A program made the translations under genes and the position numbers. The notes beneath the pieces are model-generated. The model did not search any database. It saw nothing but the letters and a program-made list of their open reading frames with translations, and was not told the DNA's origin. A stretch of 64,000 nt of DNA from assembly GCF_011386835.1 (NCBI RefSeq), contig NC_088792.1:20150001-20214000 (forward strand). The letters are read 5' to 3'. This DNA comes from Chrysemys picta bellii (taxonomy: Eukaryota). This document shows, one piece after another, positions 13,290 to 53,113 of the stretch. Numbering within the stretch: position 1 is the first letter of the stretch; each line of letters opens with the position of its first letter.

Positions 13290-13759
13290 CTAGAAATATT
13301 TTAAAAATATACAAGATTAATATACTACAGAGAGCCTTCTTCACTCTACATCGCAAGGAGCATGGGGGATTAGCTGAGATATGTTCACTGACAGACCTAG
13401 AATTGAACACTGAAGAACTGGAAGACGGGCATTCTCTGTGGGATTGTTTTACTTTGACCCTATTTCCTCTATCAGTGTGACACAGCTCAAGTATACTGAC
13501 TTGGCCTATCTGCTTGACCACTTGCCTGAAATGGGCCCTGATCCTGCACAAAGTTCTGTTCGAGAAGAACCCTGTAAATCACTGAAGCACCATGAGAGTG
13601 CAGTTCAGTCACTGAAGCACTACAGGAGTGCAGGGGGAGAGGGGTCTCTCCACAGGATCAAAGCTTTGGTTAGGAAAGTGTTGTGGTTTTTTTGTCTGAA
13701 GTGTGATTACTGTTGGTTATTACACTGGGTCCATATTTGTGGCTACTGTATGTAGATGT

Positions 13760-14198
13760 GCAAGTATTGTCTGTGTGGATCCTGCTATTGGTGTTTGGGC
13801 ATCTCATGCATGCAGGTTCAGAAAGCTTGGCCAGCAGTGTCAACTGGGTCCGCACATGCACCTTGCATGTCCCAGTTCCCCAAACCTGAGGGCATAAAAG
13901 GGGGTGCAGCCCCAACTGCCACTCAGTTCTCTCTGACTGCCTATGGCAGCGAGTTGGAACTGTATACAGTCCTCCCTGCTACACGCAGCAGATTTAGAAC
14001 TTCTCTGCTTATCCCCTCTCTAGTGCAGGATTAGTATTAGTATTTGAAGTGTTCTTCTGTCCTGTTGACAAATTTATTTTCTTCAGATCTTTCAGGATTG
14101 GTACCAAGGCAATTCCCCTACCTCACAGTAAACACAGCCCCAAGTGTTTAAACCCTGCCCTTCAATGATGGCCTCATATCAGTCATAGGTGGGTCTAT
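13760..14198 (+). mobile_element. DIRS1-like 5' fragment (left ITR, T-rich spacer, start of gag) on the plus strand
   Basis: ITR core ...cagcagtgtc...gcacatgc...gagggcataaaag...ctcagttc resembles the other DIRS ITRs; followed by ttagtattagt and an FKPCP..DG-like gag start. Confidence 0.6.
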
Positions 14199-14778
14199 GA
14201 AATGGTTTCTCAGCCTGTGGTTCTTAGGGGGACACATCTCAATGGGTGCTCCACTCTCGGTGTACTTGCGCCCCTTGTGCCTTTGTTCAGAGATTTCACA
14301 TAGCAGTGTCTGTTTGGCCTGCACATATGCTACGTAGTTTCATGCTCCACACCAAACGCTGCATATAGCGCTGTGCAGAATTGCCCTCAGTTCCTTCTCT
14401 ACTGTGAAGCTCCATAGTACACAACTCCAAAGCAGAGGGGAAGGAGGGCGAATAGTGAAGCACCCATAGGGAAACACCTCTCAAAGAACCAGTTCCTGCA
14501 CTGAGTAACCATTTCTTCTCGTTTGAGTAGCTAGGGGGTCACAGTTGAGGTAAAAATCAATACGGATGACTGCTAAGGTTCTCTCTCAGACTGAGGTGGT
14601 TGAGAAGGAACTGAGGATGGTTCGCCCACAGAGCACCATATAACCACGGTGTGGAGCATGAGACTGGGTAACACACATGCACAGGCCAAATGGACACTTA
14701 TGTGAAATCTCCAATTAAAGGCGCAAAAGGAGCAAGCGCACCTAGAATGAAGCACCCATAGGGACACTACTTGAAGAA
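14199..14778 (-). mobile_element. ORF-less mini-DIRS (left ITR + ICR + right ITR + terminal extension), ~580 bp
   Basis: Ends gaaatggtt... and ...ctacttgaagaa. The ICR (14456-14530) is complementary to both termini. Two inverted ITR copies (about 14220-14420 and 14590-14778) are separated from the ICR by only ~70 bp. Confidence 0.8.
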
Positions 14779-15368
14779 AAATTGTGTGATTACTCTGGCT
14801 TGGAGACACTGACAACTTCAAAATCACATTTCCATCTGAAAATGCTGTACCTACTATTTACATTATAATGATTTTATGAGATATACAAAGATCAGAAAAT
14901 AAACCTAAAACAGAGAAAGATATGCAGTTTGTGCATTTGTTGCTAGTCAACTGCATTTCCTGTCTTATGAATTGGTATGATGACTAACATGCAGTCTTTT
15001 TGGTCCTGGAAGACTATTCTGCAGTAGCAGAGCTGAAACTGAAAAGCAGCAGAAAATTTGCACAACAAGATGGCAGGAAGGATAAGATAGGGGTCTGAAC
15101 TATTGGGTGACAGTAACAGGTCTGCTCAAACATCAGCAGGTAAGCAGAAAAGCCCTATATATTTCATTTTAAAACCAAGGACATACTATTAAAAAGGTGC
15201 TTCATCACGTGTTTTTGTTTGTTTGTTTGTTTGTAAGTAGACAGTACTCCTTTAACTGTATTTTAAATCTATGACTGTTCCCAGTAATGGGTGTATGTAC
15301 TTATACAATGAAAAATAAATACAGTAAGCAAATTATGAATTGGAATCCTATTAGCAGTTCACACGTAC

Positions 15369-17257: not shown

Positions 17258-18841
17258 GTTGAGCACCTTGAGGTTAATGGCAAGTGCGATAATTTACAAC
17301 ATGGTTTTACGAAGGGCAGATCGTGCCAAACGAATCTGATCTCCTTCTTCGAGAAAGTAACGGACTTATTAGATAAGGGAAATGCGGTGGACCTAATATA
17401 CCTGGATTTCAGTAAAGCGTTTGATACTGTAGCCCAGGAGGAATTATTGGTTAAGCTGGAAAAGATGGGGATCGATATGAAAATCCAGAGGTGGATAAGG
17501 AATTGGTTAATGGGCAGAATGCAGCGGGTCGTATTGAAGGGTGAACTGTCAGGTTGGAGGGAGGTTACCAGTGGAGTTCCTCAGGGTTCGGTTTTGGGAC
17601 CCATTTTATTTAATCTATTTATAACTGACCTCGGAACCGATTGCAGGAGTAGACTGATAAAGTTTGCGGATGATACGAAGGTGGGAGGCGTTGCCAATTC
17701 GGAGGAGGATAGGGATATTCTGCAGGGAGACTTGAATGAGCTTGTGAATTGGAGTATCAGAAATAGGATGAAATTTAATAGTGAAAAGTGTAAGGTGATG
17801 CATTTAGGGATGACTAACAACAATTTTAGTTACAAGATGGGGACGCATTGGTTAGAAGTAACGGAAGAGGAGAAGGACCTAGGGGTTCTTGTAGACCGAA
17901 GGATGACTATGAGTAGACAATGTGACGTGGCGGTGAAAAAAGCCAATGCGGTCTTGGGATGCATTAGGCGAGGTATATCTAGTAGGGATAAGGAGGTGCT
18001 GCTTCCGTTGTACAAGGCGCTGGTGAGACCTCATTTGGAGTACTGTGTGCAGTTCTGGTCTCCCATGTTTAAAAAAGATGAACTCAAATTGGAACGGGTG
18101 CAGAGAAGGGCCACTAGGATGATCAGAGGAATGGAAAACCTGTCGTATGAAAGGAGACTAGAGGAGCTCGGGGCTGTTTAGTCTGACAAAACGAAGGCTG
18201 AGGGGGGATATGATTGCTCTCTTTAAATATATCAGAGGGATAAATACCAGGGAGGGAGAGGAATTATTCCAGCTTAGTACTAATGTGGACACGAGAACGA
18301 ATGGATATAAACTGGCAGTGGGGAAGTTTAGGCTTGAAATTAGACGAAGGTTTCTGACCGTCAGAGGGGTGAAATATTGGAACGGCCTTCCGAGGGAAAC
18401 GGTGGGGGCGAGGGACCTGTCTGGTTTTAAGATTAAATTAGATAAGTTTATGGAGGGAATGGTTTAATGGTAAGACATAATTGGTGGGGAATACCGAGCA
18501 ATAGCAGGTAAATAGTACAATGACTAACAAGGGTCAGGCTGGAGACTCTTGCCCACATGCTCGGGGTCTTACTGATCGCCATATTTGGGGTTGGGAAGGA
18601 ATTTTCCTCCAGGGTAGATTGGCTGAGGCCCTGGAGGTTTTTCGCCTTCCTCCGCAGCATGGGGCAGGGATCGCTAGCAGGAGGGTTCTCTGCAAATTGA
18701 AGTCACCAAGACACAGGATTTGGGACTTCATCAGCAGAGTCAAGGGAAGGGTAGGGACGGTTTTGTGGCCTGCAGCATGCAGGGGGTCAGACCAGATGAT
18801 CATAATGGTCCCTTCTGACCTTAAAGTCTATGAGTCTATGA
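17258..18841 (+). mobile_element. Young 5'-truncated CR1 LINE, antisense in a PAXIP1 intron
   Basis: RT ORF 17387..18181 (YLDFSKAFD, GVPQGSVLGP, KFADDTK); a single +1 frameshift at GGGG 18170-73, then ORF 18210..18467; tail ctatgagtctatga. Confidence 0.95.
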
Positions 18842-24480: not shown

Positions 24481-27400
24481 TAAGTAACCTCCATTTATAC
24501 TGTATAATGTTTATCTGTAACTGGAGGTTCTTCTAGAAGTGTGGTCCCTATCTGTATTCCACACATGGGTATGCATACACACCATGCGCCTGAGTCTGGA
24601 GATTTTCACTAAGCAGAGTACATTGTTCTGCACATGCACAGTTCTCCTCATGCTCTGAACCTAGGGTATATATGGGAGGCGGTGCAGACTGGCGCCTCTC
24701 CAGTTCCTTCTCCTACCACAAATCCAGTTATGATCTACAGCAGAGGGGATGGAGGAGAGGTAGTGGAATACAGCTAGGAACCGCACATCTCAAAGAGACT
24801 TTAGTTACAGGAAAGTACGCTCCTTTTCTTCTTCCAGTGATAGTTCCTATGTGTATTCCACATGTGGGAGATTAGCAAGCAGTAGTCAAACAGAAGATGG
24901 GTGCAAGGATGCAGAAATGATGGCTGACTGTAATACTTCTGTCCTCATAGTTGCATCTGTAGTAGAAGACTGGACCAAAGCGTAATGTTTTGTGAAGGTG
25001 TGAAAGGCACTCCAGATAGCTGCCCTATATCTCTCTGGTAGAAATGCAGTAGTCTAGTCTCACGTACATGCAGTAGAGGTTGCTTGTACTCTGGGGGAAT
25101 GGGCCCTCACCCTCTCTGGGGCAGGGATGTGAGCTAGCTGGTAACAAAGGATAATGCAATCAGAGATCCATTTAGAAAGTCTCTGTGCAGATGTAGCTTG
25201 ACCACTCAATCTCTCTGCTATAGTAAACAAAAAGTCTAGGTGTCTTTCTAATCACCGTTTTTCTTTGCAGATCAATGCCTGTGCTCTTAGGATGTACAGA
25301 GATTGAAGCTTTCTCTCTCCTCATCAGAGGCATGCAGTTTTGGGGAAAAGTATCCGTAAGTTGGATGATTTGATTCATGTGAAACTCTGGAATTATTTTG
25401 GTGATGCATTTTAGGTGGGGCCAAAGAGAGACCTTTTCTTTATAGAAGGCAGTATATGGTGGATCTGCCATCATTGCTCCCAGCTCGCTGACTCTCTTGG
25501 CTGATGTGATGGTGCCTAGGAAGGCAACTTTCATTGACAGATGGGACATAGAACATGTGGCTAAAGGTTCAAAAGAAGGTTTGGAGAGAGAAGAAAGAAT
25601 GAGGTTGAGGTCCCAATGAAGAACTGGCTTCACCAGCAGTGGGAAGGATCTAAGAAGTCCTTTCAGGAATTTAGTCATCATGGGAGGAGGGAAGATAATG
25701 TTAGACAATAGGACAACCACACTATCTGGATATCCTGGGACCAGATGATTGGGAGGAAAGCATTGCCCGCAGGTGGATTGCTCTTAGTTCCAGTAAATGG
25801 ATAGACACCCTGGACTCCCCCAGGGGTTCAGATGCCTTATGCAGTATGTTTGTCCATATGAGCTCCCCAAACTAAGAGCGAGGCATCAATAGCAATCGTT
25901 GCGTCAGTTGTAGGTGTGAGCAAAGGAGTCCCCACTCAAACTTTCTCCAGCTTCGTCCACCAGACGAGAAAGGCCAGAAACTTGGACGGAACAGTTATTC
26001 TGGCATTGAGATGGACTTTTTCTGGTGAGAAGATGGACTGATTTTGCAGGCAACAAAGATGAAGCCTGGCAAATGGTGTCATATGTGTGCATGAGGCCAT
26101 GTGACCAAAAAGGGAAAGGCAAGTTCTGACTGAAGTCAGAGAATGACCTGTTTTATGAGCTCTTCCATTGCATGGAATATCTTGGTAAGTAAATAGGCTC
26201 TCGCTGTAGTTATGTCCAAGGTCGCTCCCATGAAATCTATGGACCTTGTGGTGGTCAAAGTGCACTTTTCTTGGGTGACACAAATTCCCAAGGAAGATAG
26301 TAAATGGAGCAGGAATTGGGTAGCCAACTGGACTTCCTTTATGATCTGTCTGTAGCAGGGTGGTCACCCCGCTCATGACCTGAAGGGCTTAAAACAGCCC
26401 TGGGAGAGGGCTGGGGTGGGGGAAAAGCTAGGCTGATTAGGGGAAAGCAGCCACAGGTGGGGCTACGCCCCAATCAGGCCATGGCTGGCCCTATAAGAGG
26501 GCTGAGGGCCAGAGACTGGAAGACACTCTCTCTCTAGCTTTTTGAGACAGAAGGACCTGGCTGCCTGGGAGCTGAGAAGGATACCTAGGGTGGAGCAGTG
26601 CTGGGGAAGGGCAGTGGGAGATGGGGAACTCCATCCTAGAAAAACCCCAGGCTGCAGGCCTTGGTAAAGGGCCTACAAAAGGCAGCCCAGAGATAGGCAA
26701 AGGCAGCAGATCCTAACCCCCATGCTGATGACAAGTGGTTTACAGACTGCAGTCTGCCCCAGTGAGCAGGGGCTAGATGATAACTGGCAGTAGCCACTGA
26801 GGCAAGGTAGGGATAGAGGGTTGGGGGTTCCCCTGGGCGGGGAGACCCAGAGAAAGTGGGTTGCTGCTGGGGGCAGAACCCTGAAGTAGAGGGACACCCC
26901 GGGGCCAGTGGCGTGCAAGTTACCGGCCTGCAGAAGGCGCTCTGGGTTGGAAAGAGCTAATTCCTGAGATGACCAGCAGGAGGCGCTGCACCAGTGAGTC
27001 ACTGCCCCGCCACACTGTCATAAGCCAGTTGTTAAGTTACAGGAAGATGGAAAACCAACTTCTTCTTATCCAGGCTGCCACCACTGAAAAGACTTTTGCA
27101 AAGACCTGGGGTTCCGTAGCTAGGCCAAACTGGGCTCTGCATTGGTAATTGTCTTCACCAAAGAGGAACCTTCTGTGGGATGGGTAAATGTCTGTATGAA
27201 AGAATGTCTGTGTGAAAATCAAAATTCAGCATGGTCACACTGGCATCAATAATTCCCTCCATTGAAGAAGGCAAACTATTTAACAAACAGTTTGCCCTCT
27301 TACAGAGAGAGAATTATTGATGCCAGTGTGACCATGCAGAATTTTAATTTTTTGGATGAATAATATATTTAGTTGGCCTAGGTCGAGAATCAGACTCCAT

Positions 27401-28405
27401 CTCCCATTCATTTTGGGGACTAACAAGTATGGGGAGTAGAATCCTTTCCCTTGATGCTGAGAAGGAACTCTTTCTATGGCTCCCCAGTGGAGAAGGGAGT
27501 CCACTTCTTATGCAGAATTTCCTCGTGTGACTAGTCCCAGCAAAGGAGCCAGGAAGTAAGTTTGGGGATAGGGATTGATAGAAATGTGATCAGATAGCCA
27601 TAGTGAATAATTTCCAGCACCCATTTGTCTGTTGCGAAAGCCCTCCATTTGTGGGCAAATCTATGTTGCGACCCCTGAACCTCTTCAAGCTGTATCTGGA
27701 GTGTGGACACCACCCTTTGTAGGAGCTACTGATATTGCCTCTAGTCATCAGGCAGAGATGGTGAAGATGGCATAGCTGCCTCATCTGGGAAAGACAATGA
27801 AATTGCTCCCAAAACCATCAGAACTGTTGGATTCAGTTCAGCTCAGTCTTCTACATATTCCAATGGAGCCAGCTGGTGTTGGCCAAGAGATGGCAAGTAA
27901 GGTTCATGTACTGATTCTGGGTAATGCCAGTATGAAGGCTAAACCGGCTGAGGAGAACCCCATAGCACTGGGTACCACCTGTTTCTCAGAAAGGCCTATT
28001 TTGATTGCAGGATGGAACCCTGCTCTCTTTAGGCCCGTTTCTGCATGATAGGGTAGGGGCTCTTCTGAAACCTCTAACTCATCAGATGAAAATGCTGGAT
28101 CCTGAACTTCTGGCAGAACCAGTGATACGGTACCCAGGTTCAAGGGTGGGAGAGGAGAGAGACCCCATGACCACAGAAGAGGAAGCTCTTCTGCATCAAT
28201 TATGTCTGTGAATAAAGGCAAACCTCAGAGTAGTGGGGAGTGAGGATAGGGGAGAGCAAAAATGTCCTCCAGAGAGACATAGGTCTCGGACCATCTTGGG
28301 GTATGGGGAGAATCAGCTGGTGGGCCTGTCGGATCCAGTGTTTCCCTGGTCACATTGGAAGTTGGACTCAGACATGTGTGTACCTATATGTGGAATACAC
28401 CTCAC
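24481..28405 (-). mobile_element. DIRS1-like copy B, decayed, internally deleted, interrupted by a solo LTR
   Basis: Right ITR/ICR at 24513-24870; YR remnant ORF 25172..25720 (TSAKRVSELGA); RT remnants 27037-27504 (GFYSPYLLVPK...ILDL); partial left ITR 28360-28405. Confidence 0.85.
26351..27014 (+). mobile_element. Solo LTR (664 bp) inserted in DIRS copy B
   Basis: TG...CA termini; exact 5-bp TSD CTGTC (26346-50 / 27015-19); TATAAGAG near 26490 suggests plus orientation. Confidence 0.88.
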
Positions 28406-30149: not shown

Positions 30150-31656
30150 TTTTTTATGTTTGGATGTCTTCTACATTTTCAAATATATTGATTTCAATTA
30201 CAACACAGAATACAAAGTGTACAGTGCTCACTTTATAAAAAAACAAAAGAAATAGTATTTTTCAATTCACGTAATACAAGTACTGTAGTTCAATCTCTTT
30301 ATCATGAAAGTTGAACTTACAAATGTAGAATTATGTACAAAAAGCCTGCACTCAAAAATTAAACAATGTAAAACTTTAGAGCCTACAAGTCCAATCAGTC
30401 CTACTTCTTTTTCAGCCAATTGCTCAGACAAACAAGTTTATTTACATTTGCAGAAGATAATGCTGCCTGCTTCTTCTTTACAATGTCACCTGAAAGTGAG
30501 AACAGGCATTCACATGGCACTGTTGTAGCCAGCGTCACAAGATATTTAGGTGCCAGATGCGCTAAAGATTCATATGTCCCTTCATGCTTCAACCACTCTT
30601 CCAGGAGACATGCGTCCATGCTGATGGGTTCTGCTCGATAACGATCCAAAGCAGTGTGGACCGATGCACGTTCATTTTCATCATCTGAGTCTAATGCCAC
30701 CAGCAGAAGGTGGATTTCTTTTTTGGTGGTTTGGTGTCTGTAGTTTCCGCACCAGTGTTCCTCTTTTAAGATTTTTAAAAGCATGCTCCACATCTCATCC
30801 CTCTCAGATTTTAGAAGGCACTTCAGATTTTTAAATCTTGGGTCGCATGCTATCTTTAGAAATTTCACATTGGTATCTTCTTTGTATTTTGTCAAATTTG
30901 CAGTGAAAGTGTTGTTAAAACGAACAACATGTGCTGGGTCATCATCCGAGACTGCTATAACATGAAATATATGGCAGAATGTGGGTAAAATGGAGCAGAG
31001 GACAAACAACTCTCCCCCAAGGAGTTCAGTCAGCATGGACGCATGTCCTCTGGAATGATGACCGAAGCATGAAGAGGCACATGAATCTTTAGTGCATTTG
31101 GCATATAAATATATTGCGATGCCGGCTACAACAGTGCCATGCAACAGCTGTTCATCTGTTTCAGGTGACATTGTAATTAAGAAGTGGGCAGCATTATCTC
31201 CTGTAAATGTAAACAAACTTGTTTCTCTTAGCTATTGGCTGAACAAGAAGTAAGACTGAGTGGACTTGTAGGCTCTGAAGTTTTATATTGTTCTGTTTTT
31301 GAGTGTAGTTTTGTAACAAAAAAATCTACATTTGTAAGTTGCACTTTCACGATAAAGAAATTACACTACAGTACTTGTATGAGGTGAATTGAAAAATACT
31401 ATTTCTTTTGTTTATCATTTTTACAGTGCAAATATTTGTAATAAAAATAATATAAAGTGAGCACTATACACTTTGTATTCTGTGTTGTAATTGAAATTGA
31501 TATATTTGAAAATGTAGGAAAACATCCAAAAATATTTAATAAATTTCAATTGGTATTCTATTGTTTAACAGTGCAATTACTCGCAATTAATTTTTTTTAT
31601 TGCCATTTTTTTTTTAGTTAATTGTGAGAGTTAACTGTGATTAATCGACAGCCCTA
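30150..31656. mobile_element. Palindromic hAT-transposase derivative (two inverted copies of the transposase 3' end)
   Basis: Arms ~30150-30625 and ~31030-31520 are inverted. hAT dimerization-like motif (KYL..ATTVPCECLFSLSG) occurs on both strands. TIR TAGGGCTGTCGATTAA at 31656; the left terminal ~130 bp is missing. Confidence 0.88.
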
Positions 31657-34723: not shown

Positions 34724-34816
34724 ACTAGGCAGTATTTACACAGATGCACACATAGGTTGTAAATAAATAGGAGATTATTCTTCTCTAGCCTGGTGAACTT
34801 GTCAATGTGTCTCAAT

Positions 34817-37800
34817 GAAATGGAGGTTACTTATTGTAACTGGAAGTTCTTGAGATGCATAGTCCCTATCTGTATTCCACACGTGGATACACATGCACAC
34901 CACGCACCTGAGTCTGGAGATTTTAACAAGCAGTATCCGTTGGACTGCACCAGTACAGTAAGTCTCCTTGTGCTCCTGACTGAGGGTATAAGAGGCAGTG
35001 AGGTGTATGCCCCCCACCCGGTTCCTCTTCTTACCACAAATCTAACCAGATCCAAAGCACAGGGGATGGAGGACGGGTAGTGGAATGCAGATAGGGACCA
35101 CACATCTCAAAACTTCCAGGTACAGTAAGTAACCTCCATTTCTTTGAGTGCTGGTCCCTATGTATATTCCACACATAAGTGAGTGGCAAGTAGTGCTCAG
35201 GCTGGAAGGGGGTGTGAAGAAGCCAGAAACAAAGATTTTTTCAGTATGGCAGATCCCACTGCTACATCTGCAACAGAGGCCTGGACTTGTGCATGGTGTC
35301 TAGGAAACGTGTATGGAGTTCAAGGTAGCTACTGTACCTATGTTCTGCATTGGGAGTTCCTGCACAGATGACCCACTTGGATATGGCCTGACCTCGGGAT
35401 CGCTCTGTAATTGCAATAGAGTGTTTTGGTGACTTTCCGATAGCTTTGGTTCTTTGCAGGTAAAAAGCCAGAGCATGTGGGACGCCAAGAGAGTGAAGTC
35501 TCTTCTCTTCAGGAGAAGCGTGGGGGTTTTAGAAAAAAAGACAGATAAGTGAATACACTGGTTGATGTGAAATTGAGAGAGGACGATGGGGAGAAATTTA
35601 GGGTGGAGGCGAAGCGATACCTTTTCCTTCTGAAAGACCTCTAGGGAGGATCTGCCATGAAGGTTCCCATTTTGCTGACCCTTCTGGCCAAAGTGAGGGC
35701 CACTAGAAGCACCACTTTCATGAACAGGTGGGACATGAAGCATGTCGCTAAAGGTTCAAACGGTGGTCTGGAGAATTTTGACAGCACAGGGTTAAGATCC
35801 CATAGCAATATAGGTTTAGTGACTGGCAGGAAGGCCTCAATGAGACCCTTCATGAATTGTGTCATAGTTGGGTGGGTAAAAATAGAGTGCTCATCTACTG
35901 GAGGGAAGAAGGCATTAATGGCTGCAAGGTGGGCTTATAACAAGCTAATGAAAAGACCAGACTTTAGATAAAGGAAGTAATCTAAAACAATCCAGATGCT
36001 TGAAGTGACTGGGTAAGACTGATTGTGCTGTACAAAGGTGGAGAAATGCTTCCATTTAGCTAAAGAGCAAGTCCTAGTCAAATCTTTTCTACTCTGGGTA
36101 AGCATAGCTTGCACCAGGGAATAACAAGAGTGTTCTACTTCCAACGCACATCCAAACACAAGGCCTTAAAGTGGAGCGAGGCCAGGCTGGGGTCTTTGAT
36201 TCTGCCCCTGTCCTGCATCAGGAGTTCTGGGAAGGGGTGGGTCTTGACTGGAGGGTGGGCTGACATTGACAGCTCTGGGAACCAAAACTGTCTGTGCCAG
36301 CAGAGTGCTAGGAGAATGACGCTGGGCTTGTGGCACGTATCTTTCTCAGGACCTGTGGAAGCAGAGGAATGGGAGGAAAGGCATACTTGAAACCTTGTAA
36401 GTCATGGCCTATGGCTCCCCTGAAGCAATACAGGGGAAGGGAAATCTTTGTTTGTTTGTTTGGGATGCAAAGAGGTCCCAGGAGATGTGCCCCATTTTCA
36501 GAACGGGCTGTGGATTTCCCACTTGCAGTCTGCCTAGAAGTGCCTGCTGAGGTTGTCTGCTAAGGAGCTGCAAACACCTGGGAGGTATGCTGCCTGGATA
36601 GGAATGTTGTGCCTGATGGACCAGTTCCAAGCCTGACTGCTTACAGATACAGTGGGAAAGATCTTGCTTCTCCGTTTGTTTATGTAGACAATGGCAATGA
36701 TACTGTCTGACATCACTTGGATATGGAAGGCCCATATGAGCGGGGGGAAGGCCTTGCATACGAGGCGGACTGCCCACAGTTGCAGTTATGTTGATGTGTA
36801 GTCTGGCCTCCTGTGGGGTCCATGTGTCCTGTCAGTGTGATTGTTCAGGAGGGTGTCCTACCCCAGAAGGGAAGCATCTGTTACAATGGTGTCAACAGAA
36901 GTGGGAGTAGAGAACCTTTTCTAGGTTCGACTGCCATATGAAGGAAGCGATGATCTTGGCAGAAATGGTCACCTTGGCGTTGATGTGGTCCTTGTTGGGC
37001 AAGTAGACTGAATTGAGCCAGGCCTATAGGCATCATAGATGAAGCTTGACAAAGGGTGTCACTTGAGTGGCCTCGCCAGGATAGGCACATTCTCACTTTA
37101 GTTCTTGGTCTGGAGGATATCAAAGAAACCAGGTTGCACATCATTTGGAATCTTTCTGCAGGGAGGAAGGAAAGCACTTGTAGAAACAGAATCCAATGTA
37201 GCCCCAATGAAGTTTAGCATCCTCGTGAGGGATAAAATGGACGTTTCTCTGTTCAGACAGATCCCCGGGGATGCAAGAAGCTGAATGAGGAATTGTGTAG
37301 CTGACCTGACCTCCCATTGAGAGCATCCTACCAGGAGCCAGTCGTCCAGATATGGAAAAACTGTACGGCCCTGAGGTGTCATCTGGGCCGTCACCACAGA
37401 GAACATTTTTGTAAACACTTTGGAGGCTGTCCCTAGTCCGAAAGGGAGGACTTGGAATTGGAAGTGCTCTTGACTCACCATAAACAATAGGAACCTCCTG
37501 TGGGAGGGATGAATGTCTATATGAAAATATGCCTTCCTCATGTCGACAGCCGCAAACCACATCTCCTCCTGAAGATAGGGAATTATTGCTGCCAATGTTA
37601 TCCTGAATCTCAACTTCTGAATGAAGATGTTGAGTTGCCAAAGATCCAGACGGGGTCTCTAACCTCTGTCTTTTTTGGGAACGAGGAAATACAGAGAATA
37701 GAACCCTCTTCCTTGATTCTGAGGTGGGACCTGTTCTATTGCCCTTTGGTGTAGTAGGGATTTCATTTCCTGTTGAAGAATCACCTTGTGAGAGGGGTCC

Positions 37801-39552
37801 TTGAAGGGGGATCAGGAAGAGGGTTTGTAAAGAGGGAAAGAGAAGAACTTTATAGGGTATGCCTGAGGGATGAGCTTCAAGACCCAACTGTCTGTCATGA
37901 TTAGCTCTCAACTGTGGGCAAAAAGAGTAAGATGGCCCGCAGAAGTGGCAGGAAAAGGGGTATGTGGCACCAGTGATGGTAAGTGTGAATCCTAGGAGGG
38001 GGCTGAGAAGGGGTCACAATCATGGTGGTAGAGAGGGCTGAAAAGCAGAGCCTCTGAGTCTTCTGTTTGCATGGAGACTTGGCAGGACATTGGTAGTAGA
38101 AAGCATGAGGAGGAGGAGTTGGTCTTGGTTTATCGGTCTGACTCTGGTGCCTCCTCCTTTGAGCTGGTATGTAGATCCCCAGGAAGTGGAAGGTCGACCT
38201 CAAGTCCTTTAACGAATGCAGAAAGTCATCAGTTTTCTCATTAAAGTGGTTTGACTCGTCAAAGGGAAGGTCCTGAATAGTATTCTGCACTTCCCTGGGA
38301 AAGCCCAAGGACTGCAACCAAGAATCCATTCTCATAATAATACCAGTGGCTAAATTTCTCGATGCTGTATCCACTACATCAACTGCAGCCTGAAGGGCTG
38401 TTTTTGCCACTAACTTGCCTGCTTTAGAAGGGAGAGGAATTGGGGTCTGTCTTCAGGTGAAAGTTTGTCCTGAGAGGCTACCAGCTTAGAATAGTTGCTG
38501 AAGTTGTACTCAGCTAGCAGGCATGGGAATTGACAATGCAAAATTGCAAGCCACAGAAGAGAAGGTACTTTCTTCCCAAAAGGTAGAGTCTTTTGGAGTC
38601 CTTGTTTGATGGGGTGGTCCAAAAGTATTGTGACCTAGTCCTTTCTGCAGCAGCCTATAGCACCAGGGAATTGGGGGCGGGGTGGGAGAACATAAATTTG
38701 GCTCCCTTTGCCTGGACAAAATAGCTCCTCTTGGCCCTGTTAGGTGTGGTGGCACAGGATACTGGGGTATGCCAGACCAACCTCACTGGTTCCAATATAG
38801 CCTTATTAACCAGGAGGGTTAATGTTCAGCCGTCAGGGGTGTGGGTCTTGAACTTCCTCTAGAGGTATTTGGGGATTGTTAGCCACTCTTTGCAGCAATT
38901 CTTGGTATTCCCTATGGTTGTTCAGTGGGGTAGGAGAAAAAGGAGAGACCGCCTCACCTGGGGAGGAGGAGGAGATTCCTGTCAGAACTGTCGGTACCTG
39001 TGGTTCTGGTTCAATATCCTCCTCGTACATGGAGGGATCCAGAGGTTGGCAAGAAAGAGAAGAGTGGAAAGACTCCGGGGTCGATCCTGGGCATCTGTTA
39101 TAGGGACCCCACAGTCCCCGATGGTGCCAGAAGGAGGAGCTATTTGTGGGGAACCCCAGGGGACAGAGTAACATCGGTCTCTGGGGAGGTTGTGTCTATA
39201 TGTGTAAATCACCTGTTCAGACTTGGCTTTCTCCAGGGAAGCAAACTACACTTACTGCACTAAAACTATGACTATACCAAATCTAAGACTAACTATTTAC
39301 AATTTTATTTACGGGTTCTCCTAAAAACTGAAGAAAAAGAGAACACTAGATTCTGAGTGAGGCCATGTGGCAGTAAGAAAGAACCAAGAGGGCATCAGTC
39401 AAACTGCCTGTTACACCTTGCTCAGAAGCACAAGGAGACCTACTGCATATGTGTGGGCTGATGGACACTCCTTGTTAAAATCTTTGGACACAGCAGCATG
39501 GTGCACATGCATACCCACATGTGGAATACACCTAGGACCAGCACTGGAAGAA
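34817..39552 (-). mobile_element. DIRS1-like copy C, near full-length, decayed
   Basis: ~200-bp inverted terminal repeats; ICR 35080-35180 complementary to both ends; RT ORF 37098..37613 with YLDD; YR 35300-36160; gag 37900-39170. Confidence 0.9.
37098..37613 (-). pseudogene. DIRS copy C reverse transcriptase core
   Basis: AVDMRKAYFHI, QVLPFGLGTASKVFTK, FPYLDDWLL motifs. Confidence 0.88.
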
Positions 39553-42287: not shown

Positions 42288-43880
42288 CTACCAAACACAT
42301 GTATATACAGTTAGAAGTTGTTATTCTAACTTTAACTTATATTAAAAACAGCATGCTAGGACACCCACTTAACCCATTAAAAAGACAGACTTTGCTCTTT
42401 TGAGCTCCCAGAGGATATAATTCTTTCCCCCAGCCCCTTAGGTGCCCTCTTTCACACTACATCTCCTTCAGACATACTATGAACACTAGACCTGGGCGTT
42501 CCGGAAGATACATTTTATTTCTCTTTTAATATTAAAGATGTATTATTATGGAGGAGCTGGTCAAAGGAAACTGTTACTTATTGTAATGACAGCTCTTCGA
42601 GATGTGATGCAGATGTGTATTCTACTTAGGTGTGTACACGCCCAGAGCACCAGAGCCAGAGAATTTTGCCTAGCACTACTAACTGGGGGAGCAGCGCTTG
42701 CACCTCATGGGTGTAACCCTTCCACTAGGCAGCACCACCGCGACACTCAGTTCCTTTGCACCAAAAATCAAGAGTATAGACTCCGATGCAGAGGGGATGG
42801 AGGGTGTGTTGTGAAATACACATCTGCATCACATCTTGAAGAACCACAGTTACAATAAGTAACTGTTTCTTCTTTGAGTAGATTCAGACGTGTATTCCAC
42901 TTAGGTGACTCACAAGCAGTAACTGCAGTAGGTGCACTTAAACAAGGACTGCAAGTCTGCTCTAACAAAGTTTGCATTTGCTCTGGATGCCGCAGTAATG
43001 GCATAATGGTTGGTAAATGTATGCACAGAAGACCAAGTGGCAAACCTGCAAACATCCAATACTGAAACGTCACTTAAAAAACACCATTGACATAGCCTGT
43101 GCCCTCGTAGAGTGAGCTTGCACCCTTTGAGAGGGCATAGCTCATGTTATTTCATATGCAGTCTTCATGCAGGAAGTTATCCACCTGCACATTGCCTGTG
43201 AAGAGACTGCTTGTCCCTTCATCCAGTCTGCATATAACATGAACTGAAAGGGCGAAGTATGAAAGGGTTTAGGCCTCTCCAGGTAAAAGGAGAGACAGCA
43301 CCTAACATCCAGCAAATGAAGACGCTGGTCCTCCAAGATTGAATGCAGCTTGGGACAGAAGACAGGTAAATAAAGTGGTGTCTCAGTTTCACTTGCACCA
43401 GTGTAGGTGTGGCCACAAGGTCACTTTGTCTTTAGAGAACTGCATGTAAGGAAGCTCTGCCATCAAAGCCTGCAACTCACACACTCTCCTCGTGGATGTT
43501 ATAGCCACCAGGAATGCAGTCTTTTGACACGGAAGAGGAAAAAAAGATGCCACAGGCTCAAATGAAGGTCCCATCAGAGCTGCTAAGACCATATTCTGGT
43601 CCCACAAAGAAACTGGTTCTCTCACTGGCAGATGGAGATGAAGGACTCCTTTCAAGAACCATGGCATTCAAAAACACCAACCTCCCCTGGATGGGCAGAT
43701 GAAATGCTGAAATCACCTTCAACAATCTGAGTGCAAGAGCTGAAGATGTAACAAGTACTCCAAGGCATCCTGAATCCCACTCAACAGCAGCTGAACCTAG
43801 ACAGCCAATGATCACACCAAAAAAGTTTTCATTTAGTCAAACTAAAGAGACCCCCTCGTCTCTGTCAAATTCTGCCAGAA

Positions 43881-44206
43881 TTCAGGTATCTAAAAGGGTG
43901 TCATAAGGAGGAGGGAGAGAACTTGTTCACCTTAGCCTCTAAGGATAGAACCAGAAACAATGGGTTTAAACTGCAGCAAGGGAGGTCTAGGTTGGACATT
44001 AGGAAAAAGTTCCTAACTGTCAGGGTGGTTAAACACTGGAATAAATTGCCTAGGGAGGTTGTGGAATCTCCATCTCTGGAGATATTTAAGAGTAGGTTAG
44101 ATAAATGTCTATCAGGGATGGTCTAGACAGTATTTGGTCCTGCCATGCGGGCAGGGGACTGGACTCGATGACCTCTCGAGGTCCCTTCCAGTCCTATAAT
44201 CTATGA
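43881..44206 (+). mobile_element. Young CR1 3' fragment inserted in the YR of DIRS D
   Basis: ORF 43923..44126 (RTRNNGFKLQQGRSRLDIRKKFLTVRVVKHWN); 3' UTR and tail cctataatctatga. Confidence 0.92.
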
Positions 44207-44962
44207 AAAACAGGCCAATCTGGTGGAGGGTTTCCTGCTATTAAGTTAGATCTGTTGAACAGCCTCCAAAATGTGTTCCTTCTCTTCCTCCTCCTCGTCT
44301 AACCATTGATCAGCTACACAGTGAGGAGTAGAGAGCTGAGCGTGGGACACAAGGTCTGACCATGATGCTGGGTCAGAATGAAGAGGGAGAGATGCGGGAG
44401 GCCAAACTGACAACACCAGAAGGTTGGAGAACCAACATTGCCTCAGCCATGCTAGAGCAATGAGGGTGATCTTGGCATGGTCCAACTTAAGTTTGATACT
44501 AATCATCCTGCAGGTAATCCTCAGAGGGAAAGCATACAGGAATTCTGAATCTCAGCCCAGGTGAAAGGCATTGGTCAGCAAGCCCGGACTGAGGCCCCAT
44601 GGAGAACAGATGGTATTTCTAGTTGTCTCTCACAGCGAACAGATTGATCATAGAGATGTCCCAAAATGCAAAGATAGAACACAGGACTCTGGGCTTCAGA
44701 ACCACTCGTGACTCAGGGAGAAATTCCTGCTGAGGTGATCTGCGAGTTGAATCTGGGATCCAGGTAACTAATCAGCCACCGGAGTAATGTTCTCTTTGAT
44801 GCAAACCACCAGCCTGATTGCTTTTTGACACAGCACTGTCAAGCAAGCTCCTCCTTGTCTGTTCACATAATACATTGTTACAAACAACACCAGTGCAGTG
44901 TGAACCACTGAGCTCCTGATATGATCTGGAAAGGCATGGCATGCATTGTAAATGACCCAAAA

Positions 44963-45003
44963 CGAGAGAGAGAGAGAGAGAGAGTGTGAGTGTGAGTGTG
45001 AGT
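44963..45003. repeat. (GA)n(GT)-mixed microsatellite
   Basis: gagagagagagagagagagagtgtgagtgtgagtgtgagt seen directly. Confidence 0.9.
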
Positions 45004-45189
45004 CCTACAGCCTAAAAGATAAATAAAAAGAATCCAACTATGCAGTATTTCTTCTTAATGGGGGCTCAGTCAACTTGATGTTAATTTGAATGTTTGTACT
45101 GCATCGTTCTGATTGCCATTGAACTCGCTTGAATACAAATAATTTTACCAGGTATCCTGTATTCAGCATAGGGAAATATGGTCACCCTA
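45004..45189. mobile_element. Truncated DNA-transposon end inside DIRS D
   Basis: Ends ...ATATGGTCACCCTA (reverse complement TAGGGTGACC, a hAT-like TIR); breaks the DIRS RT; the other end is not seen. Confidence 0.5.
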
Positions 45190-48100
45190 TCCAAAGCAGC
45201 AAACCAGTCATTCTGATTTAACACAGGAGGATAGTTGATAGAGTGACCATCCGGAATCTTACATACCTGATATATCTGTTGAGGTTGCAGAGATTGAGAA
45301 TCAGTCTCACCCCTCCTTTGAATGTGGGAACCAGAATGTTATGGAAATAAAACCCTTGGCTCTGGTGTTGCAGAGGGGCTGCCTCTACAACTCCCACTGC
45401 GACCAAAGACTGAATCTTCTCGAGGAGCAGTGTCTCATGAGAAGGGTCCCTGAAGAGGGATGGGATAGAAGGGCAGAGAGAAGGGATGGAAAAGAACTCG
45501 GTGGAGTAACCTGATCTGATGGTGCTGAGGACCCAGCTGTCGGTGGTAATCGAGCCCCAAACATAAAGAAAATGAGTCAACCTGTCTCCAAATTGGGGAG
45601 ACAGGGACATAGAGGTCACAAGTGGATTGCTACCCTGGACAAAAAAGTCAAAACACATGCTTGGTAGACACCGGGGTAGGACAAGTCGACTGACTGAACC
45701 CAGTACCCGAAGACCTCTGCCTCTTGTACCTATGACCATTTCCCCTGTGGGAGGGAAAGACTGCCCAAATGAGCACCACGAACAACACTGTCGATGCTGC
45801 TGCTGACTGTAAAAATGGCATCGCCGCACCGCTGGAGTATAGATACCCTGAGCGCACAGGGTAGTCCTGGAGTCTTTAAACGAATGCAAGGTTTCATCAG
45901 TCTTATCCGAAAAAAGCACTCGACCATGAAAGGCAGGTCCTCAGTAGTCTGCTGCACATCAGTAGCAATGCCCAAATTTTTCAGCCAAGATGCCCTTCTC
46001 CTGGTTACCGCTGAGGCCTTAACTCTGACTGATATATCTGCCACGTCCAAAGCCACCTGCAAGGATGTCTTGGCCACCAAAGAGCCCTCAGCTATCAATG
46101 CTCAAAAATCCTCCCTGGAGGCTTCTTGGTCTACAAATTTAGACATAGTCTAATTAATAAAATCACACTTGGACAGCAATGCCTGCTGCTTTGCAATACA
46201 TGTTTGCAGGGAAGAAGAGGTATAGATTTTTCTACCCAGCAAGTCCAGCATCTTGGATTCCTTGTCCTTGGGAACAGAGTTTTATCTGCGCTGCCAGGTC
46301 CTATCATTCACTTCAGTCACAACCAGGGAATTAGGGACCGGATAGGAACAGAAGCCCTCAAAACCCTGCATAGGTACAATAACACTTCTCTGAACACTTC
46401 ACCGCAGGTGGCACTGAAGCAGAGTACTCCAAAGAACCTTTGAAGGCTCCAGGAGTGCATTGTTAATAGGGAAGGCTACCCTCCCCAGGGCAGATGGCTG
46501 GAGAATATCCAGTAGTTTGTGAGTATTCTCCAGCCGGAGGTCTGCCTGGATGCCCAAGGTAACAGTCACATGATGCAAAAAGTTCTGGTAGGCCTTTAAG
46601 GAGGGAGAACAGCAGCCTGGTAATGCTGAATCGTCAGGGGATGACGATGAAACAGTCAGCTGCACTAGGGATGAGTCCCACCCCCAAACTGTCAGACCTG
46701 GATGGGACAACTCTGGAGGCCCCAAGGAGGACAGCTCAACTGATGCCAGAACCTCTGGTAGAACCGACATGCCTGCTGATCTTGCTCTGGAATGGGATGA
46801 GGAGTGCAACCTCTGAGACCAAGGAGCGTCCCATGGATTCCAGGGAGGCCACTGGGGATACACTTGGGCCGATGATGGCCAGTAGGCTCTGGGCCAGGGC
46901 CTGTCTCAGTATGATGCTGCTCCGAGAACTGTCTATAGCGCAGATCAAGCGATGGAGAGCAGGAGAACTCCAACCTGGATCCCAAGGAGACCTGGGTCTC
47001 TGGGAACAGTGGTGGAGCTAGTCCCAATGGTGCAAGGAGCCAGTCCAACTCATTTGCTACCCTGTAGGAAAGAGGTTCAGTTGCCAATGATGGAACTGGC
47101 ACATCCGATGCCAAATGCATCACGGTTGCATGTGGTGCCAGGAGCTGTGACAAGGTGGAAGACGGGATCTGCTGCCAAGAGAATGGCAGTGCTATGGGGT
47201 ACACAGGTGCCAAGGAGGTCCTTGGTGCCGGGCCGGGCAATGGCCTCAACTCTGAGTCTGTGGCAGGGAGAGACCACGCTGCATTGCTGATGGACCCTGA
47301 GATTCTGCAACACACCCAAAAGGTGCCAGTGAGGCCATGGATGCTGTAACCCCAGCAAAGTCCTGGATAAATGGGGAGTCCAGAATAGGCAGAGTGGGGA
47401 GTCTGAAACTGATGGGCTGCTGCCCAGTATGCCATTGGTGGGGAAACAGCTGGTGCCGGCACTGATGTCATTGATATCAAACTCAACGAACACCCCAGGG
47501 CCAGAACCAGAGTCAACTCTTGCAAGCCTCTACGCAGAACCAGTGAGCAGTTTGAAGGAACTGCTCCATCCCATATGCCGGAAGTGGCACAGTGCCGGTC
47601 CATACTCTTCTTAGACAAAGAGGAAGAATCTCTATAAATCTGGAACAGTCCTGACTGGTCTTATGAGATCTTTTCCTCGGCGAACTCGAGGAGGGCAAAC
47701 GGCTTCTTCATCTCTTGGGAGAGATGCCAGCCCTAAAGCAGCGAGTGGCATTACTCACCAAGCCAAAGGGTGACCTCTGATCCCACATGGCCCTCAGTGC
47801 TGAAACAGGCCTCAAGGCCTACTCGAGGAAGTGATGCTTAAAGGGGAAGGTCTCTAGCCACCTGAGTCCTTTCAGTGAACAATTTACAAACTGAACACCG
47901 CTCCTTGGCATGACCCTCACCCAAACAGAACAAGCACCTTGTGTGGGGATCACTGATGGGGATTACCCCTCCCCCCAAACAATGAGCAGTGTTTGAACCC
48001 TGGTGAGGGCATCATCCAAGGCAACTAACTACACTAACTTACTAACACTAAGTAGGATACTAACTATACAACCATATACAGAGAAAGCTCTCAGTAACTG

Positions 48101-49858
48101 AGAGGGGATTGTGATGTGAAACCAACACAACCCCCAGGTGATGAACTGAGAGGTCAGTACCACCCCTCTATGGGTACTGCTAGGCAAAGTTTTCCGGCTC
48201 TGGTGAGCTGGTTGCATGCACATCTAAATGGAATATGTGGCCACATCTACTCGAAGAACTCTGTAGTTAAGGTGTGTGTTCCATTCTTCACTTAAAGAGG
48301 CAATCTATGAAAAATAGAGCATATCCTCACCAAACTTACAGCACTTACTATTTGAGTAGAGAATGAATTTTCTGAGAAAGTACAGGTAAATCTATTAGTA
48401 GCTTATGAGTTAAAATATTAATTAAAAACCAGGTCCCTTGAAAATTTACCATTTGTATCAGTCTTTTCCTTGTCCCATGTGATTTAATAACGGAACACAG
48501 ACTCTTCAAACTTTCCACATAAGAAAAATTAATTGAAATCTTATTCATGGATTCTGTTCCTAGACAAAAAACTATGGTAAGATGCAGTTACGGCTGAGAG
48601 TAATCTAAGGGTAACAAATATTACAAGTTATAATTATCCCAAAACTGAAAATTATAAACCCAGGAAATTCAGAGTGGAGGTTACACTTAAAAGAAATCCA
48701 AAACATGTTAAGATAAGAAAAGCACAACTGAAGCGCTCAACCATATCTTGTACAGGCACCACACAATAACCATATGTAAGCATTTTACTGTTTGTGGTCC
48801 TAGATTAAACTAATTTTAAAGGCATGTTACACTTTATTCATGCTTTTCCTTCATTTAGGGTGCCAGAAGGAGTTGTTTAAAAATTATTTATGAATTTTGA
48901 TTAACCCCCCCCCCCACATTAATTAATAAAATAATAGTAGGACCATTTCTTATAAAGCCTATTAAAAGCTGGATTGAGAGAAACAGTGCCAGTCTACAGT
49001 CTGATTTTCTCTTGGAGCCACTGAAGCAAGTATTAGGATTGTGTGCATTTATTTTTGATTAAAAATAGAATGTAACATGTATGCGTTTCAATGCACGTTA
49101 GGTGCAGCCCATGTCTCCTGGCAAATACCCAATGAAGCCTATAAAGGTTTTACTGGTATAAAATTAGTTGCAATTTATATAATTTAAACATGTATGTATA
49201 TTTCAGGATAAATTGGTCTGGATTTTCTGTACAAGTACAGTCTAGCTGGTAGATTTTTTTTTTTTTTTTTTTTTACAGTAATGGAGTTCCAAAAATGAAT
49301 ATAAGTTTTATACTGCGTGGTTCCACTTTATCACTTATTTTCAGTTGTATGTACAAATCACGTATCTGCTGAAATACTTAATATAAAACAACTTCCACTT
49401 AAAAGGAAAATGGTGAATTAATGGGATCAGATCACAAGTTGTCAGAAAGACAAGCACACAGCAGGTTAAAAAAGAAATAATGAAAAAAATGTAAATATTT
49501 AATGTAAAACTACTCTAAAAATCAACTTTCTAGTCTTAAATTGCAGGATCTCATATTTTCTCCAATTCTTTGTATTGCAACTCCACACTGTGAATCTAAT
49601 AACTGTTACAGTTTCACATATGCTGTCAACTTCTTTCCCCATTGGAGCTATGAAGTTATTAATAGAGTGACAAATCTTGCAGTCTTTACTGAGACAAATT
49701 CCCATAAACAGCAATGGAAGTTTTATGTTAGTGAAAACTGAAGAACTTGACCCACAGTGTGTTATTTATTCTTTACAATAAAACCTGCAAACACGGACAT
49801 ACTTCAATGATACTTCAGTACATGAGCGTATGCCAACTTATGTTATTATTTTGCTTAC

Positions 49859-49954: not shown

Positions 49955-50870
49955 CTGGTAAAGCATTAAAACCAAATTTTTAATTAAAATGTTTGTTAAT
50001 CTAACTAGCCCCCAGTTTCAAATGGAGTCATCTGCTTAACAGACAATGTTAGGGGAGTGTTTTTACACCTTAAGTGCTGGCCTCAGTTAAAAAACAAACA
50101 ATGGCATACTTGCAAGAAGCAAGTAAGTTTTGCAAACAAAGCCAAGTTCTTTCATACATCAATATGACAAGTGTGTTCTCTTGCTTATTCATCTTTAAAA
50201 ACGCATCCATTCATAATGATTTAAAAATGCATTACTTGGGAACAGCTTCTCTTTGTATGAGTTTAAAAAAAGACAGTGTTACCTGTTCCGTAACTGGTGT
50301 TCTTCGAGATGCGTTGCTCATGTCCATTCCATAATAGGTGTGTGTGCTTGCCACATGCACTGGTGCCGGAAGTTTTTCTCTCAGTGATATCCATACGGGA
50401 CTGGCTCTGGCACCCTCTGGAGTGGCGCGCACATGCCATGGTATAAGGGGCACTGCCGGCTCCCCCCACACTCAATTCCTTCTTGCCAGAATCTCCGACA
50501 GTGGGGAAGGAGGGCGGGTCATGGAATTGGACATGAGCAACACATCTCGAAGAACACCAGTTACAGAACAGGTAACTGTCTTTTCTTCTTTGAGTGCTTG
50601 CTCATGTCCGTTACATATTAGGTGACTCCCAAGCAGTACCAGAGGCAGGTAGGAGTTCACAGACGCGTAGATTGCAACACAGCTCTGCCGAACCCAGCGT
50701 CATCTATGGCCTGCTGAGTGCGCCATGAATGTGTGAATTGAAGACCACATTGTGGCTCTGCAAATGTCCTGGATGGGAATATGCGCCAGGAAGGCCGCCA
50801 AGGACGCCTGGTCTCTGGTCGAATGGGCCCTCATGATTGGTGGCGGTGGGACTTGTGCCAGCTCATAACA

Positions 50871-51217
50871 CAGTGGTGGGCTACCGGCAACCTACGGGCC
50901 GCACGCAGCTCATCAGGGTAATCCGTTGGCGGGCCACGAGACAGTTTATTTACATTGACTATCCAAAGGCACGGCCACCCGCAGTTCCCAGTGGCCGCAT
51001 TTCAACGTTCCTGGCCAATGGGAGCTGCGGGAAGAGGCGCGGGCTGGCCGCCGTTTCCTGCAGCTCCCATTGGCCAGAAACAGCGAACCGCAGCCACTGG
51101 GAACTGCGGGTGGCCGTGCCTGCGGACGGTCAATGTAAATAAACTGTCTCGCAGTCCGACAGCAGATTACCCTGACGAGCCACGTGCGGCCCGTGGGCCG
51201 CAGGTTGCTCACTACTG
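50871..51217 (+). mobile_element. Palindromic hAT (Charlie/Buster-type) MITE, 347 bp, in the YR ORF of DIRS E
   Basis: CAGTGGTG...CTACTG termini; exact 8-bp TSD TCATAACA (50863-70 / 51218-25); arms are inverted over ~150 bp. Confidence 0.9.
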
Positions 51218-51870
51218 TCATAACAGCTCCGGATGCAGGAGATGATCCAGTTGGAAATCCTCTGGGAGGGCACCGAAAGGCCCTTCTTCCTGTCCGCTGT
51301 CGCGATGAAGAGCTGGGTTGACCTGCGGAAGGGCTTGGTACACTCCAAGTACAACACCCAGGCACGTCTGACTTCCAGGGCTTGCACCCTCCTTTCCTCA
51401 CTACTGGGGCGCGGCTTGGGACAAAACACCAGGAAGAAGATCTCCTAGATGACATGGAAGGAAGACTCCACTTTCGGCAGAAAGGCTGGATGGGGTCACA
51501 GTTGAACTTTGTCCTTGTAAAACACCATACATGGCAGCTCCGATGTCAGGGCTTTAATCTCTGACACTCGTCTCGCTGATGTTATTGCTACAAGGAAAGC
51601 GACTTTCCATGACAGGTGGGAAAGGGAGCAGGAGCCCATAGGCTCAAAGAGCAGACCCATGAGCCTAGAAAGAACCAAGTTAAGGTCCCACTGTGGCAGA
51701 GGAGCCGAAACCGGCGGGAAGAGCCTCTCAGGAATCTGATTGACATGTCATGCGAGAACACCATCTGACCTTGGATCGGTGGGTGGAAAGCGGAGATGGC
51801 CACATGGTGCACCGTGATGGAAAGAGGCTAGTCCCTGGTTCTTAAAATGAAGCAGGTAATCTAAGATAGA

Positions 51871-52637
51871 TTATAAGGAGGAGCATGACAAAGAGATGTT
51901 ACGCTTAGACACCCAATAGGAGAACCTCGTCCACTTCGCCAGGTAGGTTGCTCTGGTGAAAGGCTTCTTGCTTTCCAGGAGGACTTGCTGGACCTCATCA
52001 GAGCAGGCCCGCTCTTCTGGGTTCAACCATGCAGCATCCAAGCCGTGAAGTGGAGGGAGGCGAGGTTGCGGTGGAGGAGGTGCCCGTGATCTTGGAAGGG
52101 GCCAGGGAGTGGTCGCCGCTGGGTTCATCAGTGTGCTGAACCAATGTTGGCACAGCCACACTGGGGTGATCATCATGACTTGGGCCTTGTCTCTCTTTAT
52201 ATTTGACAAGACTCTGCTGATGAGTGTCATTGGGAATGCGTATATCAGACCCCCTGACCATGACAGGAGGAAGGCATCGGAGAGAGAGCCCTTGCCCAGA
52301 CCCTGGAGGGAACAGAATTGATGACATTTTCTGTTCTGTCTTGCGGCAAACAGGTCCACTTGGGGAGTTCGCCACCTCTGGAAGAGCATTTGGGCTACCT
52401 CCGGATGCAGCGACCATTCGTGGTGAGAGAAAAAAAGACCTGCTGAGGCGATCTGGTCATGCCGGGGAGGTGGCAGGCCTCCAGGTGCATCACGTGCTTG
52501 ATGCAGAAATCCCACAATTGGAGAAGCCTCTTGACAGAGTGCTGACGAGCGTGCTCCCCCTTGTCTGTTGATGTAAAACATAGAGGCCGTATTGTGCGTC
52601 ACCACTCTCACCACATTGCCTGACAGATGCGGTAGAA
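51871..52637 (-). pseudogene. DIRS copy E RNase H C-terminal part and methyltransferase-like (MT) domain
   Basis: VTHNTASMFYINRQGGARS (RNase H); PQVDLFAARQNRKC and LIYAFP (DIRS MT motifs). Confidence 0.78.
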
Positions 52638-52964: not shown

Positions 52965-53113
52965 CGGCAGAAAGACCCTGCAGGCCAAACGTACCACTCT
53001 GAGCTCCATGACGTTTATATGCAACATCATCTCCTCCAGGGACCACGTCCCTTGGGTCTGTAGCTCGCCTAGATGCAACTCCCCAGCTGATGTCCGAAGC
53101 GTCCGATATCAGT

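Follow-up and report, generated by a model that had tools for sequence, protein, structure and literature searches.

Background

Non-autonomous tyrosine-recombinase retroelements are, as a concept, already known. TOC1 of Chlamydomonas belongs to the split-direct-repeat type of the DIRS order. It is an active non-autonomous DIRS element (PMC9940879). SIRE of Trypanosoma cruzi, about 435 bp long, is a shortened form of VIPER in which about 30 bp lie between the 5' end and the 3' end, and its authors have debated both possibilities, mobile element and remnant (PMC6681497). For the DIRS-1 element of Dictyostelium, the internal complementary region (ICR) is essential, the reverse transcriptase (RT) can act in trans, and a marked element in truncated form stopped short of complete retrotransposition; it is so far only in Dictyostelium that the cis requirements of DIRS RNA have been addressed experimentally (PMC7192593).

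Here we compare with these systems a DIRS1-like element of about 580 bp without open reading frames (ORFs) for DIRS proteins, found on the minus strand at 14199-14782 of a turtle sequence of 64,000 nucleotides, the whole of which we call the window. With the DIRS1-like ITR/ICR elements, by which we mean Dictyostelium DIRS-1 and the vertebrate DIRS including three gene-bearing copies in the window, this mini-element has in common the ITRs, an ICR that lies directly upstream of the 3' ITR and complements the 3' terminus with its own 3' half, a terminus rich in T and of TTC type, the lack of a target-site duplication, and homology in the ICR region. An initial sequence-only reading had suggested that it could belong to a family for which that reading knew of no description. 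Non-autonomous elements using a tyrosine recombinase (YR) have in fact been described, TOC1 and SIRE/VIPER being examples, but a vertebrate mini-element of the ITR/ICR type was not found in a search of an incomplete collection of papers. The mini-element is, in our judgement, probably a one-off fossil, an ITR/ICR-type DIRS1-like copy that suffered an internal deletion either during reverse transcription or after insertion.

Anatomy of the mini-element

Along window coordinates, the order of parts is right ITR, spacer, ICR, stub, and left ITR, as listed in Table 1 together with the other DIRS copies of the window. The ITR arms 14242-14402 and 14599-14759 align as inverted repeats of 161 nt at 80% identity with indels (123/153; BLAST E = 1.9e-18). 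On the sense strand the element begins TTTTTCTTCAAGTAG, which is the outer 5' end from 14760 to about 14782 and includes the TTCTTC start that the sequence-only reading had pointed to. This terminus is also marked by paralogs, in that 39-57 paralogous contigs per run lose their likeness just past 14778 and then continue into varied flanks. The inner boundary of the left ITR has a motif, GTTGAGAAGGAACTGAGG, common to the mini-element and to E3, one of the gene-bearing copies. At the opposite end, the terminal extension lies outside the ITR and within the stretch complementary to the ICR. The stub presumably represents 5' untranslated sequence of the parent element.

Table 1. Positions in the window of the parts of the mini-element, of the summed contig depth across it, and of the other DIRS copies
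Feature	Position	Strand	Evidence or remark
Right (3') ITR (14242-14402) with 43-nt terminal extension (14199-14241)	14199-14402	-	Arm alignment; ICR complementarity; orthologous contigs
Spacer, ICR to right ITR	14403-14453	-	Matching layout in E1-E3
ICR half facing 3' terminus	14454-14515	-	Complementary to 14199-14255
ICR half facing 5' terminus	14513-14543	-	Degenerate, probably clipped at inner end
Putative deletion breakpoint (internal junction)	14541-14544	.	ITR/ICR likeness ends at 14543; paralog from the opposite side ends at 14541; depth drop in junction bin
Internal stub, ~55 nt, adjoining left ITR	14544-14598	-	Paralog match 14541-14722 at 82% (X1 record 8)
Left (5') ITR with outer end	14599-14782	-	ITR proper 14599-14759; arm alignment at 80% identity
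X1 summed depth	14402-14509		8018-8210
X1 summed depth, junction bin	14510-14563		235, of which the orthologous contig alone gives 31
X1 summed depth	14564-14617		4101
X1 summed depth	14726-14779		18794
DIRS fragment	25340-27507	-	RT and YR pieces
E1	about 34811-39536	-	Gene-bearing DIRS copy
E2	about 42567-48235	-	Gene-bearing DIRS copy
E3	about 50267-57097	-	Gene-bearing DIRS copy

Read directly, the joints between element and flank are GGTCTAT/GAAATGG and CTTGAAGA/AAAATTG, with no target-site duplication, and on the sense strand a TTTC-type motif is present at both of them. The computed fold of the sense-strand RNA is an ITR panhandle (-258 kcal/mol, z = -12.4). As to coding capacity, the longest ORF has 84 amino acids, no ORF runs across the internal junction, and there are no Pfam hits. 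That 84-residue ORF lies over the left ITR and has no relatives in a set of 5.8 billion proteins. A tblastn search with DIRS proteins gives no similarity between 12 and 17 kb of the window, and Rfam has no matches in or around the mini-element. The claim from sequence alone that, within ~580 bp, a DIRS-derived unit without ORFs has an ITR at each end, an ICR, and the 3' extension is borne out by the ITR alignment, by the ICR complementarity, and by the null result for ORFs and Pfam.

DIRS ancestry and the other copies in the window

The DIRS insertions of the window have recognizable remnants of gag, RT, methyltransferase, and tyrosine recombinase, on the minus strand. Positions 14424-14530 of the mini-element match the ICR regions of E1-E3 at 71-77% identity on the same strand, and therefore its own sense strand is the minus strand. 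At their low-coordinate (3') ends, E1-E3 have an ITR, a short spacer, and an ICR, the two halves of which complement the 3' and the 5' terminus, respectively; in E3, for instance, these pairings are of 50528-50587 with 50267-50326 and of 50586-50624 with 57059-57097.

Six loci were found through homologues of the E3 RT, their sources being Malaclemys, Chelydra, Gopherus, and one Logan contig. The mini-element is 71-81% similar to the ICRs of DIRS loci from Chelydra, Gopherus, and the Logan contig, with L002, L003, and L006 among the loci matched; it matches in the ICR only, and its parent was not recovered among the six. A blastn search with 14150-14830 gave ICR-level matches to E1-E3 only and no further copy of the mini-element within the 64-kb window, and another 138 kb of turtle DNA likewise has none.

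Internal deletions are commonplace in the neighboring old DIRS copies. E2 keeps remnants of gag, methyltransferase, and YR and is missing RT residues ~170-448 relative to the RT of locus L002, while in the fragment at 25340-27507 RT residues 106-423 nearly adjoin YR residues 95-213, the C-terminus of the RT, the methyltransferase, and the N-terminus of the YR being lost.

Two further features of the gene-bearing copies are recorded here. A GTTAC..GTAAC palindrome is found at the 3' ends of E1 (34826-34842), E2 (42572-42588), and E3 (50277-50297) and in the matching ICR halves, with one arm altered in E2. It is possibly the 3' hairpin for which a role in priming reverse transcription has been proposed (mentioned in PMC7192593). 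The coding part of E3 contains 2 related palindromic cassettes at 50860-51228 and 52638-52964, with arms of 180 nt at 81% and of 111 nt at 96%; the cassettes are 75-78% alike, and in Rfam they have only weak, sub-threshold matches of hairpin type to miRNA models.

The internal complementary region

The sequence-only reading had the ICR complementary to both termini. This holds for the 3' terminus, where 14454-14515 pairs with 14199-14255 at 43 of 57 positions and not one of 2000 shuffles scores as well. The same half is a direct repeat of the outer end of the left ITR (14456-14475 versus 14748-14767, 95%). For the 5' terminus the match of 14513-14543 is not significant on its own: 498 of 2000 shuffles do as well, and the two have only TTTCTTC..AGTAG in common. 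A 12-mer in this half, TAGGGGGTCACA, resembles TAGGGGGACACA in the right ITR (p about 0.06). In paralogs, the corresponding ICR half fits the 5' end over 25-40 nt, as seen in opposite-strand joints of 14491 to 14778, and the likeness of the mini-element to the ICRs of E2 and E3 stops at 14528-14530. It seems that the 5'-facing half has decayed in this copy and that its inner end at ~14543 has been clipped. Likewise decayed in the mini-element is the GTTAC..GTAAC palindrome found in E1-E3 and at the 3' ends of the abundant family. With the 5'-facing ICR half degenerate or clipped and the 3' palindrome decayed, it is too strong to say, as had been said, that every cis-element is kept.

Genomic setting

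The mini-element sits in an intron, sense to the gene, of what we take to be PAXIP1. Just downstream of it, on the minus strand, is an ORF with a BRCT-like exon, most of this ORF being intron. The two flanks of the mini-element are unrelated to each other, and therefore it is not nested inside a single repeat.

Several other repeats lie in the vicinity. The flank next to the 5' end, 14780-14887, is repeated, with an X1 summed depth of 470-680 where unique sequence has 30-64, and at 14888 the depth falls to ~7. This flank resembles neither the left flank nor any other part of the window, and is probably a separate old repeat beside or into which the DIRS inserted. On the other side, a short repeat at 13808-13969 (X1 depth 150-336) is separated from the mini-element by ~230 bp of single-copy sequence. 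An ORF at 30401-31216 on the minus strand has a hAT dimerization domain (E = 3.3e-08) and one at 17387-18181 on the plus strand has a reverse-transcriptase domain (E = 2e-25) that is not of the DIRS copies, and these indicate further transposon remnants in the introns. All five DIRS-derived pieces, from 14199 to 57097, are on the strand of the PAXIP1 exon ORF, which is the minus strand.

The locus in related turtles

At least half of the words of 13900-15100 occur in 18 public sequencing runs from seven organisms. Contigs of four organisms (X1, X7, X12, and X13, one run each) were aligned to 13700-15300 at a likeness of at least 80%. The runs are of close relatives only, with at least 55% shared 31-mers, and X1 is possibly the source sample of this assembly and so is not independent.

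The insertion is present at the same locus in contigs of three other related species as well as X1. Contigs run from the left flank into the right ITR in X7 (record 25, 13700-14417), X12 (record 9, 13894-14416), and X13 (record 17, 13700-14318), and from the element into the right flank in X7 (record 32, 14751-15205) and X13 (record 24, 14753-15205). The internal junction is crossed in X1 (record 6, 14388-14777, 0 differences), X7 (record 30, 5 differences), and X13 (record 21). No empty-site joint of 14198 to 14779 and no longer DIRS at the orthologous locus is found in the contigs of these four runs of close relatives. The locus is thus orthologous and fixed in several related turtle species. 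Divergence inside the element is 1.3% in X7 and 1.7-2.2% in X13, to be compared with about 1.1% and 1.5-1.9% in the flanks; the element diverges as its flanks do, and therefore gives no sign of constraint.

Copy number of the internal junction

Paralogous contigs that match the ITR and ICR parts number in the hundreds. The evidence on the junction consists of short-read contigs rather than reads, taken as the longest pieces only and at a likeness of at least 80%, so that copies below 80% are invisible to it. The summed depth of the junction bin in the four runs is 235, 19, 22, and 244, where the neighboring bins have 8210/4101, 993/316, 557/270, and 10085/3848, respectively.

Among the longest pieces listed, paralogs on the ICR side leave the window sequence at 14519-14530 (X1 records 3, 5, and 7; X12 records 15 and 16; X13 record 20; X7 record 28), and most of those reaching 14526-14530 run on for 37-210 nt unlike the window (all of the above except X1 record 3). 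Coming from the side of the left ITR, X1 record 8 fits as far as 14541 and then has 313 nt unlike the window. X7 has a single non-orthologous contig at 14567-14568, which is there 39-40 nt from its own end and is read as ending at about 14528. Non-orthologous contigs number 1-5 per run over 14520 and over 14561-14568, and among the longest pieces listed none other than the orthologous contigs crosses 14530-14541. Paralogs from both sides appear to converge on the putative breakpoint at 14541-14544.

The junction appears to be near single-copy, apparently present only at the PAXIP1 locus and its orthologues, with a few extra copies possible given the 1-5 paralogous contigs per run. At a likeness of at least 80%, a sizeable family sharing the junction can be excluded. 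Dispersed copies with the same junction and different flanks, which had been put forward as the mark of a mobile family, do not show up among the longest pieces at 80% likeness or more, and the unique junction that had been named as speaking against one is apparently what the locus has. As to the other feature named in that sense, none of the close relatives examined has a full-length DIRS in the orthologous position.

Origin of the mini-element

On the reading that we favor, a one-off fossil, gag, RT/RNase H, methyltransferase, and YR were lost in a single deletion that began ~55 nt inward of the left ITR and reached as far as the ICR, at its inner edge. The copy is left with both ITRs, the ~55-nt stub beside the left one, the spacer, the terminal extension of the right one, and an ICR that is slightly clipped. 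This deletion may have occurred before integration, by a template jump of the reverse transcriptase across the base of the ITR panhandle, or after integration, by a genomic deletion across the inverted repeat, and the product would be the same. In the panhandle fold, the two breakpoints lie together at the base of the stem. Thereafter the copy was probably not amplified further but inherited vertically; it is fixed in several related turtle species and drifts neutrally, and it is presumably inert, with only passive transcription as part of the intron. Insertion of a full-length DIRS whose interior was then deleted in place, a sub-case of the one-off fossil in which distant turtles would keep the longer element, is somewhat less likely than not. 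Long inverted repeats promote deletions in genomic DNA, and the nearby old DIRS copies have independent internal deletions of their own, but the locus has no longer form in the four runs, which as close relatives are weak evidence on this point. Ectopic recombination between direct repeats, here the terminus and the ICR, has been suggested for DIRS (PMC8498967) and was considered separately; it would remove one ITR and was rejected, since both are present.

That the coding part has been removed almost exactly and the non-coding signals nearly all spared is also what selection for a non-autonomous element would give. Such an element would belong to a small old family of mini-DIRS made up of ITR, short stub, ICR, and ITR, transcribed from a promoter in the ITR, with autonomous DIRS supplying in trans the RT and YR for copying and integration, as happens for TOC1 in Chlamydomonas and as VIPER may do for SIRE. 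The clean loss of the coding part, with the spacer, the 3' extension, the ITR of each end, and the larger part of the ICR kept, fits this well, as do the trans activity of the RT, shown only for Dictyostelium DIRS-1, and the status of its ICR as an essential cis element (PMC7192593), and the 1-5 paralogous contigs per run over 14520 and 14561-14568 could be its members. We nevertheless think such a family unlikely. Its members should cross 14530-14541, where non-orthologous contigs are absent among those listed; all the longest paralogous pieces listed diverge at the junction instead, and depth in the junction bin is 20-40 times below that of the parts on either side. The locus has neither an empty site nor a polymorphism in the four runs, the 5'-facing ICR half is degenerate or clipped and the 3' palindrome decayed, and no second copy accompanies the four other DIRS pieces of the 64-kb window or occurs in the 138 kb of other turtle DNA. 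The TRIM/MITE-like non-autonomous family of the sequence-only reading accordingly finds no support in a junction that is near single-copy, at which the listed paralogs diverge, in a locus that is fixed without an empty site in four runs. A reading in which the unit owes nothing to DIRS, being an inverted repeat arisen by chance or a DNA-transposon MITE, would also account for terminal inverted repeats without an ORF, but it is hardly credible when gene-bearing DIRS copies have ICRs homologous to the internal region, an internal stretch complementary to one terminus is a layout specific to DIRS, a target-site duplication is absent, and the termini are common to hundreds of DIRS-like paralogs.

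Significance and comparison with known systems

As it stands, the mini-element is a decayed, internally deleted intronic transposon copy of a kind that is routinely masked by repeat annotation. Its value is as a clean natural example of how a single deletion, with both ends of the gap at the foot of the ITR panhandle, can leave little more of a DIRS than the ICR and the terminal repeats. Should the family after all be real, against our expectation, it would be the first non-autonomous ITR/ICR DIRS element described in a vertebrate and would provide a natural definition of the minimal cis signals. If this junction turned up in further copies, these would reveal which parts of a DIRS RNA are needed for copying and insertion by borrowed enzymes.

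Among the known systems, TOC1 resembles the mini-element in being a DIRS-order element without enzymes of its own, but TOC1 is demonstrably mobile and multi-copy, whereas the turtle element comes without a second copy or shown mobility. SIRE is likewise a short, gene-less element, formed by the two ends of a YR retroelement with a short internal piece between them, and the same question of trans-mobilized element or remnant applies to it; it differs as a high-copy family with split direct repeats, while the turtle mini-element has the ITR/ICR arrangement and an apparently single-copy junction. The TRIM and LARD derivatives of LTR retrotransposons and the laboratory mini-Ty1 (cited in PMC7192593) similarly have terminal repeats and minimal cis signals with the coding region gone, but these are amplified families or donors proven by helper assays, and they use an integrase instead of a tyrosine recombinase. 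The closest relatives are the DIRS1-like elements themselves, which at 4.7-6.8 kb carry gag, RT/RNase H, methyltransferase, and YR, where the mini-element, at about 580 bp, has none of these and its ICR is degenerate in the 5' half.
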